This document shows, piece by piece, positions 517-18,759 of a stretch of DNA of 64,000 nucleotides (its first letter is position 1; the number at the start of each line of letters is the position of its first letter). The translations under genes were made by a program, and so were the position numbers. The notes under the pieces were generated by a model that was not told the origin of the DNA, made no database searches, and saw nothing but the letters and a program-made list of their open reading frames with translations. Location: the IMG/VR virus record IMGVR_UViG_3300037054_000148, positions 1-64,000 of that record. One strand, 5' to 3'.

Positions 517-1947
517 TTACAGGGTGATCGGCTCGTAGCGAGGTCCGTTGAGGACTTCGAGCATCATCTCCATCGGGGTCGTGGCCTGAGCCTTGATCGC
601 CTTTTCGAAGATGCTGGGGCTGCATCCGGAGACCAGATACGTGCCCTTCTCGTCCATCGTGACCGGGGTCTGGTCGTTGCGGGAACTCACGTTCCAGAAG
701 ATGATGGTCGGGAGCTTGAAGCCGGAGGCCGCGTACTTCGCCTTGATCACTTCCAGGTTGGTGTTGTTGCCCACGCAGGAGTCGAACTCCATGTCGGAGA
801 TGATGAAGATCTTGGTGGGCATCTCGGAGGCCGGGAGCTTCGCCTTGACCGCAGTTGCCAGAACCACGTTGAACACGGCCTGGAGGTCGGTGTTCATGCC
901 CCAGTTGGCCTGGGACAGGTTCTTGATCTTCTCATAGAGGGTCTGCCCCTTGAGAGCCTGGATGCTAGGAGTTCCACTGAAAGTGATGAACTTGTCGTGG
1001 AAGATCCCCTTGTTCCGCTCAGCCAGATAGATGGCGAGGGAGATGCACACGGTGATCGGAGCGACCGTTCCCATGCCACTGAACATGGAGCCCGAAACGT
1101 CCGCGACAACGAGAGCGTTGTCATCGGTGTCTGCGTAGTTCGGCAGGCACTTCCACATCGCCTCAGCGGTCTGGTCCTTCTCGTTCATGGACTTGGCGAC
1201 CAGTTCGTAGGGGTAGAGGGTGCCGGAGTTGATCTTCTCCTCCCCGCGCACAACCGCAGCCAGGAACTCGTCGTAACGAGTGCCATCGTGACGCTTGAAC
1301 GCATCCTTGTAGATCAGACCCGCACGGGATGGAATCTGGCCATAGGAGATGGTGTCCCACTGGTTCTGAGACATGAGGGTCTCGACCAGCTTGATCTTCC
1401 CACGCAGGGTGGACAGGTTCTTGCGGTACTGGACCGGAGTCCACCCCAGGGCCTTGACCCAGCGGTGTGCCAGGGAGACGGTCTCCTTGGAAGAAGTGTT
1501 GATGCTGGGCATCCACTTCGCCAGGAGGCTCACGCCATCCTCGGACCCAAGGTCCAGGTTAAGCTGCTCACGGATGACGGACACGACCTTGGGGTCGGAC
1601 ACGTACTCCACAATGTCATCCCAGCGTCCGTAGACCGGCACGTAGGACAGAATGTGATCGAACACCTCACGGAAGTTCTTGTACAGTTCACGGAGCCCCT
1701 GGCGGAAGGTCTCGCGCTCCCCCTGACCCCCACGGATGTCGCGGATGTAGAAGAGGCAGCGGATGGCCGTCAGACGGTCCTCACCGAATGCCTTCAGGAA
1801 GAGGGCAGTGTTGTCCTGGCCCCGACGAGCGGGGGCGTGGTAATAGAAGTCGAGCACACCGTCCAGCGTGGACTGATGCGTCAGCGCACCGTTCTCGGTA
1901 CGGGTGTAGTTCTGGGACTTCTGGATGGCGTTAAGTAGGTTGGACAC
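517..1947 (-). CDS. DUF2828-family Ro60/TROVE-like protein with C-terminal vWA domain
   Basis: TENGA..H.ST, RDIRGGQGER, YGRWDD and LAKWMP motifs, vWA MIDAS DVSGSM and ISDMEFD; AAGGAG RBS; strong GC3 codon bias. Confidence 0.85.
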   Translation of the reverse strand: MSNLLNAIQKSQNYTRTENGALTHQSTLDGVLDFYYHAPARRGQDNTALFLKAFGEDRLTAIRCLFYIRDIRGGQGERETFRQGLRELYKNFREVFDHILSYVPVYGRWDDIVEYVSDPKVVSVIREQLNLDLGSEDGVSLLAKWMPSINTSSKETVSLAHRWVKALGWTPVQYRKNLSTLRGKIKLVETLMSQNQWDTISYGQIPSRAGLIYKDAFKRHDGTRYDEFLAAVVRGEEKINSGTLYPYELVAKSMNEKDQTAEAMWKCLPNYADTDDNALVVADVSGSMFSGMGTVAPITVCISLAIYLAERNKGIFHDKFITFSGTPSIQALKGQTLYEKIKNLSQANWGMNTDLQAVFNVVLATAVKAKLPASEMPTKIFIISDMEFDSCVGNNTNLEVIKAKYAASGFKLPTIIFWNVSSRNDQTPVTMDEKGTYLVSGCSPSIFEKAIKAQATTPMEMMLEVLNGPRYEPITL

Positions 1948-1979
1948 GTCGATCTCCTTGAAGGAAAAGTTGAAAAATC

Positions 1980-2093
1980 AAGACACCGTTGATGCTTCAT
2001 CGGCGGGGAAGCTCGAAAACCGCTTGACGAGCTAGGGGGTAGTTAGCCACCATCACTCGTCCGCTCATATTTGAGGTTTGCTGCAAGTGTCTT
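1980..2093 (-). ncRNA. RCAGCAA stem RNA copy B (Y-RNA-like candidate)
   Basis: AAGACAC-UU-GCAGCAAAC...GUGUCUU closing stem; ends 33 nt before the DUF2828 start. Confidence 0.7.
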
Positions 2094-2112
2094 ACAGGAA
2101 CAACAAAGTTAC

Positions 2113-2162
2113 TAGACGCAGTTTCGTTCCATGACAGGGGAAGAAGTTGCTGTTAGCGTCTA
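2113..2162 (-). ncRNA. RCAGCAA stem RNA copy A (Y-RNA-like candidate)
   Basis: UAGACGC-UA-ACAGCAAC...GCGUCUA closing stem, starting just after a -10-like box. Confidence 0.7.
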
Positions 2163-2169
2163 CCTAAAG

Positions 2170-2177
2170 ATAATACC
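2170..2177 (-). promoter_or_regulatory. -10-like element (GGTATTAT) for the RNA A-RNA B-DUF2828 unit
   Basis: GG-TATTAT 7 nt upstream of the copy A stem. Confidence 0.5.
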
Positions 2178-2217
2178 GCGAATTTTGTTTTTTGGATTAC
2201 TTTTTTTTCGAAAAAGC

Positions 2218-2691
2218 TCAATCGGGGTTGTAAGAGGCGACGAAGGCAGCGATAAGAGCCATGATTTCAGTATTTGAATAAAGTCGCTGGCTAACTCCAA
2301 AGACTGGCGGAACCGTGTTGTCAATCTTCAAAACCAGTCCGTCTACGATCTTGTTCAGTGGAATGTAGACCGGATAGCCAATATCAAGGTTGCTGTCCGT
2401 CAGAACCATGATCGGGTCTGCCTCTAACAAATCGGCCCAACGTTGGACTGATTCAGGGAGCTTGGTGCTGATGCCGTCAGTGGCTCCAGGATCGGTGAAG
2501 ATATAGAAGGTGCCAGTAGGGCCCAAAACCCAAGTTGGTTGATCCTGAATCGGCTGAGCGGAGAACGTGAGACGATACATTTCACACAAAACGCCTAATG
2601 GGTCGAACCCATTAGGCGTATGTAAATACTGATCAGTCCAGGGATAAGTGGTGGCTTCTAGGGTAGAGACCCACTCGGTTAAGATGGACAT
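2218..2691 (-). CDS. hypothetical protein
   Basis: 157 aa ORF, GGAGGAG RBS. Confidence 0.65.
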   Translation of the reverse strand: MSILTEWVSTLEATTYPWTDQYLHTPNGFDPLGVLCEMYRLTFSAQPIQDQPTWVLGPTGTFYIFTDPGATDGISTKLPESVQRWADLLEADPIMVLTDSNLDIGYPVYIPLNKIVDGLVLKIDNTVPPVFGVSQRLYSNTEIMALIAAFVASYNPD

Positions 2692-2758
2692 ATAAGCTCC
2701 TCCCGTGTCATTAGCCTATTTTGTAGGTTCACACATTAGAAGCGGCTAGTCGCTGAGC

Positions 2759-17228: not shown

Positions 17229-17229
17229 G

Positions 17230-17378
17230 TGGATGGCGTGGACGGAATCGAACCGCTCTGCGCTTTGAGCCTTGCAAAGCCCTCAGCACTTCCCTCACCC
17301 TCATCTCCTTAAGACCAGTGGTACCCTGATCAGAGACAAGCGGCACTCTGTCCGAAGAGTGTAAAGAGGCCCAAGCCA
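17230..17378 (-). ncRNA. tRNA-like RNA (8 bp acceptor, 4 bp T-stem, non-tRNA body)
   Basis: UGGCUUGG/CCACGCCA-UCCA, T-loop UUCGAUU. Confidence 0.55.
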
Positions 17379-17379
17379 T

Positions 17380-17456
17380 TGGTCGGAAACGAGAGATTCG
17401 AACTCTCGACCCCCTGCTCCCAAAGCAGGTGCGCTACCAGACTGCGCCAGTTTCCG
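17380..17456 (-). tRNA. tRNA-Pro(UGG)
   Basis: C1-G72, loop UUUGGGA, ACCA. Confidence 0.93.
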
Positions 17457-17620
17457 ATTTGATTCGTAGTGGGGGCTGTCTTTACAACAGCGACATAGGA
17501 TTGCTTGAGGGCTGGATCAGAGCGGCCTCAACCGTGCTCACATTCATTACTAAGCAGCCCCTTACTATGTACACTTTCGGGAGCCTCTTTTCATCTTCTG
17601 AGCTACCCCACCTTATTTTA

Positions 17621-17726
17621 TCAGGACTATCGGACTCGAACCGACCACCCCGCCCTTATCGGGGGCTGAGCTAGAACCAAACCAAGGCAACTAGTATGCC
17701 ACACCAGACTTCACTGGCGGTCCCGA
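17621..17726 (-). ncRNA. tRNA-like RNA (T-arm plus acceptor-like stem)
   Basis: CGGGAC/GUCCUG stem, UCGG-UUCGAGU-CCGA. Confidence 0.45.
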
Positions 17727-17830
17727 TTGGTTTCGCAGACAAAACTGATATTCTCCTTGTTGGTCCCCTCCTCGCGGGTTCGCGCCTCCTTATAGGTCGT
17801 GGCGTGAAGCTGGGGCTGTCTGCTGAAATT

Positions 17831-17930
17831 TGGTCGCGGAGTGAGGAATTGAACCTCACAACCCCTTATAGATACTCAGTCGAGCTACTAGGAGAGTGGG
17901 TTCCGGACCCCCTTCGCCGTTCAATCCACG
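17831..17930 (-). ncRNA. tRNA-like RNA with non-canonical body
   Basis: CGUGGA/UCCGCG-ACCA, GUGAGG-UUCAAUU-CCUCAC. Confidence 0.55.
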
Positions 17931-18673
17931 ACTTTTCTCTAAAAGCGAGTCTTTCATTTAAACGATCCGCGAAGATTTGTGGGTAGGATCACACATTCCC
18001 ACCCCGTGCCAGAAGTTTAGTGACGCTATGGCTGGGGTGCCAACACTTTGGAATCGTGAGGCTGGCCTGAAGCGTCCTGGCTCGTGCGTCTACTCACTTA
18101 ACCCGGCCTTGTCTTCTGCTCCCGGTTTCCCGGTGAAATCAGAACCTAATCATTTCCGGATCATACCCAATTCTGCTTTCCCGAAGCACCTGATATTCTC
18201 GCTTCACAGACTCTAAGGGTATTTGTTTGAGCAGGTTGCAAAGAATCGATATGAGGTTTTGGTGAGACCCCTTACTCGAACCATTCTATGCCTCATGGTT
18301 CCTGTCAGGATTTTGCAGCGTAGATTCAAGAGCTTTCATTGGGCTCCCGTGTAGCACCTGACTGTCTCCCAGCCGTCAAGCTGGTATGGCCGGTTGACGC
18401 CGGTCACGCGATATACCCACGTTTTTCGTTTGGCACTGGAAAACGTGGAAACCTTTGGCCATAACCCCAACAATCTACGGTGCCGGTTTACCAGTCACGA
18501 GCGTAGAAACATCGTTGAGAGAGAAGCTGATTCGCCGGTTCCCGGTCTACTCTTAACGCCGCCGTGCGAGGGCTAATTAGCGAAGAGTGGAATTGTTGAC
18601 TCCAGGTTTATTTAAACTCTGTCTAGGTTCCCAGAGGTCCATTCCTGAAAATCCCCATCAGCAGAATAAAACT

Positions 18674-18759
18674 AGACGCCTCTGCCCTCTTGATTTTTGG
18701 AGAAGAGTGCGGAACTCCTGGCATGGGGTTTCCCCCTAGGTTGGTTGCTGCAAGCGTCT
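18674..18759 (-). ncRNA. RCAGCAA stem RNA copy E
   Basis: AGACGC-UU-GCAGCAAC...GCGUCU. Confidence 0.68.

Follow-up and report, generated by a model that had tools for sequence, protein, structure and literature searches.

The first 64,000 nucleotides (nt) of the IMG/VR record IMGVR_UViG_3300037054_000148 (positions 1-64,000, one strand; hereafter the window), which belong to a large phage, carry a gene for a DUF2828/DUF7788 protein together with six copies of a small RNA element. These probably form a new variant of the Ro60/Y-RNA particle, in which the protein would be a divergent Ro60 and the six elements its Y-RNA-like partners. Animals, about 5% of bacteria and a handful of phages have particles of this kind, whose function remains poorly defined in both bacteria and phages. 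Our reading draws on the predicted fold of the protein, the architecture and covariation of the RNAs, their genomic linkage to the gene and the transcription of the region; that the protein binds the RNAs, and all that would follow from binding, we infer. An earlier note on this DNA, made from its letters, had proposed the elements as partner RNAs of a divergent Ro60 clade, and the proposal held wherever computation could test it.

The pattern GACVCNNRCAGCAA has six matches in the window, all on the minus strand, against a mean of 0.03 and a maximum of one in shuffled sequence, so the six-member RCAGCAA family of the earlier note stands. Every copy shares the same layout: a 7-nt 5' strand (N-N-G-A-C-N-C), two variable bases, (A/G)CAGCAA, then an interior of 30-95 nt that is unrelated between copies, and finally the strand complementary to the first, with an unpaired G after it. 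Taking each element from the first base of its terminal helix through the unpaired 3' G, we obtained limits that differ by 1-3 nt from those first given (Table 1). The helix is perfect in four of the six copies and has one mismatch each in elements 3 and 6. The complementary closing strand described in the earlier note is indeed present and covaries, but the stem is 7 base pairs (bp) long, not 5. We refer to the constant part, i.e. the 7-bp terminal helix, the 2 nt, ACAGCAA on the 5' strand and the unpaired 3' G, as the handle. When the six copies are aligned with a seventh from the locus L142, whose contig equals in length (313,597 bp) the one encoding the identical protein, this handle alone is conserved and the interiors do not align, as expected from the claim of an invariant motif enclosing different interiors. 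The predicted fold of each window copy pairs its two ends; fold z-scores are modest, save for element 5, whose fold is the most stable of the six (z -3.6).

When the window was scanned with a covariance model derived from the short homologous elements of other phages, all six copies were recovered and no further convincing element appeared. A possible seventh at 23881-23939 scored 12.8 bits and lies within a 111-codon open reading frame (ORF); we treated it as a chance match. A megablast search of the phage collection returned no close cultured relative of the window.

Table 1. Coordinates of the handle elements and associated features (positions in the window unless a locus is named).
Feature	Position	Strand	Description
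Element 1	1979-2093	minus	115 nt; AAGACAC-UU-GCAGCAA ... GGUGUCUU-G; interior multi-hairpin; 3' end 31 nt upstream of the start codon of the DUF2828 protein; U-rich tract after
Element 2	2112-2162	minus	51 nt, short type; UAGACGC-UA-ACAGCAA ... GCGUCUA-G; encloses one small hairpin; best covariance-model match of the window (39.9 bits, E 5e-8)
Element 3	7234-7323	minus	90 nt; 6/7 helix pairs; lies in a non-coding region with abundant transcript; covariance model 19.2 bits
Element 4	11286-11379	minus	94 nt; in the tRNA/tmRNA array, flanked by tRNA-Arg (11444-11520) and an ORF; covariance model 22.6 bits; U-rich tract after
Element 5	13056-13139	minus	84 nt; inside the tRNA array; covariance model 24.6 bits; U-rich tract after
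Element 6	18672-18760	minus	89 nt; 6/7 helix pairs; upstream of the tRNA array; covariance model 14.2 bits; U-rich tract after
-10-like hexamer TATTAT	2170-2175	minus	7 nt before element 2 (counted from its first base); may be a promoter
DUF2828/DUF7788 protein gene	517-1947	minus	476 amino acids; predicted Ro60 fold (Pfam, PHROG, AlphaFold2, Foldseek)
tRNA array	9368-17456	minus	15 tRNA genes (ARAGORN) and one transfer-messenger RNA (tmRNA) gene
Bas63 handle RNAs	L284 20073-20140, 20240-20298, 20695-20763		three RNAs between tRNA genes; in MZ501086 at 82072-82139, 82239-82297 and 82694-82762

In order to follow the handle beyond the window we used 80 viral-contig loci holding relatives of the protein (39-97% identical), each with the gene oriented to the plus strand. 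The exact window pattern occurs in 34 of these loci, and all its matches but one lie on the strand of the gene. Leaving the sixth helix base free gives 76 matches on the gene's strand and one on the opposite strand. The closing strand is present at 81 of the 83 relaxed-pattern sites, and it is followed by G in every one of the 81. The two outermost helix pairs, which are not part of the search pattern, are nevertheless paired in 72 and 76 of 81 copies, the outermost being A-U and U-A almost equally often. If any helix sequence is admitted, 229 elements are found on the gene's strand against 29 on the opposite one, with helix variants that include GAC, GGC and GAU cores. In an alignment of 56 short elements, compensatory changes affect seven of the seven helix pairs, which upholds the stem covariation reported in the earlier note, and RNAalifold independently predicts the same terminal helix. 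These 56 elements, from which the covariance model was built, had been picked for pairing; the unbiased evidence is therefore provided by the relaxed-pattern counts and the strand asymmetry.

The elements are linked to the gene. We found 161 covariance-model matches in 69 of the 80 viral loci, and 107 in 62 of 80 loci from bacterial and archaeal genome assemblies, an independent set absent from model building, where most matches lie less than 600 nt upstream of the gene. All 268 matches of both sets are on the gene's strand, and a single locus may hold up to 11 copies. The association is also seen from the opposite direction: among 117 stretches of viral contigs retrieved with the short-element pattern, 49 hold a DUF2828 gene, although these stretches average 8.5 kb and the gene was sought within that stored sequence only. 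The earlier claim that motif and DUF2828 genes co-occur thus holds in both directions. By contrast with the elements, no protein family accompanies the gene consistently: when same-strand ORFs within 4 kb were clustered in 81 loci, no family appeared in more than 13 loci, the most frequent being HNH endonucleases. The handle elements are therefore the most consistent neighbour of the gene.

The presence of HNH genes raises the question of a mobile repeat, i.e. a miniature inverted-repeat element or the target of a homing endonuclease, with no role at the RNA level. Many copies per genome, short terminal inverted repeats and HNH endonuclease genes as the commonest neighbours would all fit such an origin. 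Nevertheless, the interiors are unrelated, the inverted repeats covary instead of being conserved, orientation with respect to the gene is the same in 268 of 268 cases and the region is transcribed, so that we regard this explanation as barely conceivable. In the window itself, three HNH endonuclease ORFs lie among the tRNA genes at 7593-9319 (minus strand). At two loci (L204 and L217), contigs whose bins are Promethearchaeota (Asgard) and Woesearchaeota contain DUF2828 genes with handle elements upstream; either archaeal viruses or binning artefacts could account for them.

Pfam assigns the window gene to DUF2828, as the earlier note had done, and adds DUF7788. The protein consists of an N-terminal helical (HEAT-like) ring domain, corresponding to DUF2828, followed by a C-terminal vWA domain (DUF7788). 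It matches over its full length the family PHROG 850 'RNA-binding protein' and has more than 6,000 homologues. An AlphaFold2 model based on an alignment of 40 members is confident (predicted local distance difference test, pLDDT, 89.2; predicted template modelling score, pTM, 0.87). A Foldseek comparison of this model with the PDB returned Ro60 structures for all of the top ten matches (E 3.5e-9 to 1.7e-5, over 492-582 aligned columns): frog 1YVR, 1YVP and 2I91, human 9NEN, 9NFA and 9NF8, Deinococcus Rsr 2NVO, and 9KOP and 9L5Y from the Thermus phage phiLo. Template modelling (TM) scores range from 0.48 to 0.62 for nine of the ten, Deinococcus Rsr giving 0.39, at 11-15% identity, and matches restricted to the vWA domain first appear at rank 11. 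The residues D283-x-S285-x-S287, T353 and D385 are invariant in 40 homologues (49-92% identity), which corresponds to an intact signature of MIDAS, the metal ion-dependent adhesion site, assigned here from the motif pattern alone; many arginines of the helical half are likewise invariant in the homologue alignment. On the strength of the model, then, the protein is predicted to have the Ro60 fold postulated in the earlier note, and yet forms a separate sequence family.

Some neighbours of the gene may also concern RNA. About 180 nt downstream of the Ro60-like gene and on its strand, positions 59-334 encode a small ASCH/DUF3850 protein. The ASCH domain is predicted to bind RNA; this gene is no conserved neighbour of DUF2828 genes in other loci. 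A P-loop protein at 19805-20230 (minus strand) matches phage 'ATPase / polynucleotide kinase' families, and the product of 4387-4743 (minus strand) resembles, weakly and below threshold, the cyclic-phosphate-processing receiver domain (cREC_REC). These two similarities hint at putative RNA-repair functions in the vicinity of the Ro60-like gene.

Transcription of the region could be followed in contigs of peat and permafrost metatranscriptomes, which carry no strand information. Depth is 0 for several kb, 2-32 for the gene together with elements 1 and 2, and 44-122 across 6915-7500 (contigs 6915-7400 and 7035-7500), which contains element 3; such a very uneven depth speaks for RNA as opposed to contaminating DNA. 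In three runs, contigs stop at 2150-2152, a point some 10 nt into element 2 from its 5' end, and one of them runs straight into the sequencing adapter, compatible with an RNA 5' end near 2160-2162. The earlier note had placed elements 1 and 2 between a -10 box and the gene: a TATTAT hexamer is indeed found at the expected place (Table 1), but a consensus scan of 1900-2300 gave neither a full sigma-70 promoter nor a classical terminator. In other loci, consensus -35/-10 promoters lie 5-8 nt upstream of the first helix base.

The position of elements 1 and 2 suggests another possibility, namely that the elements are leaders acting in cis on the DUF2828 gene, for instance as autoregulatory operator sites in its mRNA, and not independent RNAs. 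Two window copies do fall in the 5' leader of the gene, 49 of the 80 viral loci have a copy less than 400 nt upstream of it, and RNA contigs connect elements 1 and 2 with the coding region. However, four of the six window copies are 5-17 kb away from the gene with other genes intervening, and the copies of cluster L mycobacteriophages and Felix-O1-like phages lie downstream of it. Moreover, copies can be as many as 11 in a locus, many flanked by tRNA genes at tRNA-like spacing, and some have a consensus promoter of their own. We therefore consider a cis-acting role improbable.

Near element 3, the ORF-poor stretch at about 6455-7560 also contains a candidate non-coding RNA of about 370 nt (6455-6830, minus strand) with a strong intrinsic terminator at its end. 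It has no Rfam match, its fold z-score against shuffles is -5.4, and contig depth reaches 209-376 over it, where the genes nearby have 0-32. The sequence of 6496-6770 recurs, circularly permuted, in one 305-nt contig, and the stretch is 85% identical in two related loci (L002 and L003).

The tRNA array, the tmRNA, the DUF2828 gene and the six elements all lie on one strand of the window. In the viral loci and two cultured-phage loci, 700 tRNAs lie on the strand of the DUF2828 gene and 16 on the other. It could be thought that the elements are mere punctuation of phage tRNA operons (sites of processing, spacers, terminators) and that only the tRNA arrays, next to which the gene is frequently found, bring them close to DUF2828 genes. 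Of 186 elements, approximately 29 start no more than 10 nt from the 3' end of a tRNA and 24 have a tRNA no more than 10 nt after them; a T-rich tract comes after 18% of elements against 6.5% in controls, and the combination of a 7-bp helix and a single unpaired base recalls an acceptor stem and its discriminator base. Such a role is nonetheless contradicted by the loci that have no tRNA gene at all, where the strict pattern finds elements in 24 of 27 viral and 45 of 51 genome loci. Conversely, the 25-tRNA array of phage T5 has none: its 40-kb region gave no handle match (the best candidate, 14.9 bits, is on the opposite strand), and no gene is annotated there as Ro-like or DUF2828. An invariant single-stranded ACAGCAA is not known from sites for RNase P, RNase E or RNase Z. 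Punctuation of tRNA operons thus appears very improbable as the function of the family.

Among its tRNA genes, phage T5 (L200, NC_005859 30284-41566) has eight annotated 'stable RNAs with unknown functions'; none of these carries the handle, and they therefore belong to a different class of tRNA-array RNA. They resemble the elements described here in being small, in some cases tRNA-like, and interspersed among phage tRNA genes. In the window, Rfam adds to the 15 tRNAs of ARAGORN one at 14156-14253 (minus strand; 44.8 bits), which is unusually long (98 nt), and a match to the tRNA-Sec model at 8078-8165 (minus strand; 39.5 bits) is also unreported by ARAGORN. Inside the array, a sub-threshold match to the wcaG RNA (RF01761) is found at 12480-12580 (minus strand; 30.9 bits for a cut-off of 42, E 0.023).

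A heptamer that is invariant and apparently unpaired, within an RNA that varies elsewhere, is also reminiscent of a seed, by which the elements would act in trans as regulators, with the Ro60-like protein being at most their chaperone. The complement TTGCTGY is, however, not enriched in the window (19 occurrences for 14.9 expected, four of them on the strand of the tRNA and protein genes). As the heptamer is fixed across phages of Mycobacterium, E. coli and Firmicutes hosts, its target would need to be universal, and the fixed helix spacing and the invariant 3' G point instead to a structural recognition unit. We accordingly give little weight to a seed-based mechanism. Each of the four alternatives considered here is contradicted by at least one direct result.

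If the handle is constant, the interiors that it encloses are of several kinds. Short copies (45-65 nt) hold one small hairpin between A-rich strands. Among 113 non-redundant long copies (at least 75 nt), 45 contain a canonical T-arm, defined as a perfect 5-bp stem with a UUCRANY loop. The seventh copy mentioned above, that of L142, has a T-arm. The Rfam model of the bacterial Y RNA YrlA scores 39.5 bits on a long copy of mycobacteriophage Finnry, 39.8 on one of LeBron, and 37.8 and 32.3 on those of two further loci (L016 and L017); none of the four reaches the gathering score of 69, and three of the matches cover only the tRNA-like core and not the Ro-binding stem. By their sequences, the long forms thus appear to be built like YrlA but with a different handle. 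A range of interiors extending from simple hairpins to tRNA-like modules fits the notion, put forward in the earlier note, of a fixed handle with interchangeable interiors. No Rfam 15 family, Y RNA (RF00019) and YrlA (RF02553) among them, matches the six window elements, either at the gathering score or at E<=10, and the handle is not described in Rfam 15 or in the literature as searched.

The protein family is widespread. We found it in 706 of 50,697 cultured phage records, including those of Felix-O1-like coliphages and Salmonella phages, of Listeria, Staphylococcus, Enterococcus and Campylobacter phages, of KVP40-like vibriophages and of cluster L mycobacteriophages, to which thousands of metagenomic relatives must be added. 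The literature mentions of DUF2828 that we found concern plant proteins and a tardigrade genome only, which implies that the family has eukaryotic members. Canonical Ro60 with YrlA-type RNAs has for its part been reported from 254 bacteria and 22 phages (PMC4201824).

One member of the family has a known phenotype: gp130 of coliphage Bas63 counters the Ppl defence and was found to be structurally similar to Ro60 (PhageMaP preprint, PMC11482910). It belongs to the same family as the window protein (33% identity, E 3e-88) and is encoded directly upstream of a tRNA array. Some of the annotated tRNAs were proposed by the same authors as possible Y RNAs of gp130 (PMC11482910). Our results differ from this suggestion, as three handle RNAs (Table 1) lie just downstream of gp130 in unannotated gaps between the tRNA genes, and not in annotated tRNA genes. 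Handle-bearing RNAs likewise occupy unannotated gaps in phages mistaenkt, Finnry and LeBron. In LeBron, whose gp53 is moderately toxic on over-expression (PMC13148394), we considered an overlap of the RNAs with the toxic gp54 and rejected it, since gp53 and gp54 are separated by an unannotated gap and the RNAs are placed there. Small annotated coding sequences do overlap handle RNAs in Finnry (gp55, L199 5541-5756) and in Bas63 (bas63_0137, L284 20749-20901), one of them antisense, and may be mis-annotations. Records of cluster L mycobacteriophages already label the protein 'Ro-like RNA binding protein'. Its Ro-likeness was therefore known from this annotation, PHROG 850 and Bas63 gp130, while the RNA family appears to be new.

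The proposed system has much in common with the bacterial particles formed by Rsr with YrlA, YrlB or Yrn1 RNAs (PMC4201824; RF02553). Both associate a vWA ring protein with several small RNAs encoded next to it on the same strand. The ends of these RNAs pair in a terminal helix, above which the 5' strand bears a conserved motif rich in purines, and, over the related loci taken together, long tRNA-like and short hairpin forms occur. They differ by the absence of TROVE at the sequence level, by the use of ACAGCAA with a 7-bp helix and a 3' G in place of GNCGAA(N)G, and by a copy number reaching 11 per locus, often among tRNA genes. The closest arrangement is that of the Thermus phage phiLo, where a Ro60-fold protein is preceded by two small RNAs, Yrl1 and Yrl2 (PMC12135203), just as the window gene is by elements 1 and 2. 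There, however, the protein is a recognised Ro60 homologue and the RNAs carry a CGAA motif (PMC12135203), and both binding and a complex with PNPase were demonstrated experimentally. As for the metazoan particle (1YVP, 1YVR), it shares the overall fold and the principle of a terminal-helix handle with a variable loop in several paralogous RNAs, but its Y RNAs, which are polymerase III transcripts and bind La, contain GGUCCGA in a bulged helix, and its protein has no detectable sequence relationship with that of the window (12% identity in the structural alignment).

Several observations weigh against a Ro60/Y-RNA particle. The handle is not a known Ro60-binding motif, these being GGUCCGA in animals and GNCGAAN0-1G in bacteria (PMC4201824), a difference which the earlier note had itself pointed out. 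A Pfam scan at E<=0.01 detected DUF2828 and DUF7788 only and no TROVE domain (PF05731), and neither phmmer nor a 40-sequence profile found Ro60 or any other chain among PDB sequences; as these searches were all empty, the link between the protein and Ro60 is visible by fold comparison only. With a different motif and no sequence match to TROVE or the PDB, a shared mode of RNA recognition is an assumption. Contigs show elements 1 and 2 as contiguous with the mRNA and element 3 within a longer transcript, in libraries for which discrete small RNAs are beyond resolution. None of the six window elements has a T-arm, even with a relaxed pattern, and no element was detected in 11 of the 80 viral and 18 of the 80 genome loci. 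Finally, gp130 alone, from a plasmid or inserted in T7, restores growth on the Ppl host (PMC11482910). Cognate RNAs are thus not needed for anti-Ppl activity, and would rather modulate it or have other roles; in some processes Ro60 is likewise active when free of RNA (PMC4201824).

All things considered, we favour a divergent Ro60 with Y-RNA-like partners, and such a system might work as follows. Some of the RNAs would be transcribed from their own promoter and start at the first helix base, while others would be cut from the tRNA-array transcript. Their 5' and 3' ends pair in the 7-bp helix, leaving one 3' G unpaired, with a single-stranded ACAGCAA two nucleotides above; this constant handle would be the docking site of the ring protein. 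The variable interior would represent a payload, either a plain hairpin in short copies or, in many of the long copies of other phages, a tRNA-like module of the YrlA type. By analogy with Ro60 and Y RNAs, further factors, for example exoribonucleases or enzymes directed at tRNA, may be tethered or gated by the payload. The particle could then serve RNA surveillance or protection as well as counter-defence during infection, the variable interior supplying specificity. A bolder extension, which we put forward tentatively and consider rather unlikely, is that the handle functions as an address tag by which one ring protein is loaded with a genome-encoded repertoire of RNA payloads (tRNA mimics, decoys, adaptors), forming an RNA-specified platform for counter-defence and surveillance of which the anti-Ppl activity would be one output.

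In phages the DUF2828 family is far more frequent than canonical Ro60, and one of its members has a defence-evasion phenotype in E. coli K-12 and hitherto no known RNA partner. The handle RNAs add a family with hundreds of members to the catalogue of RNAs and explain many unannotated gaps in phage tRNA arrays, while the few small ORFs annotated across them become doubtful. Since candidate partner RNAs with a sharply defined handle can now be given exact coordinates in tractable phages, the role of Ro60 in phages becomes open to direct experiments.

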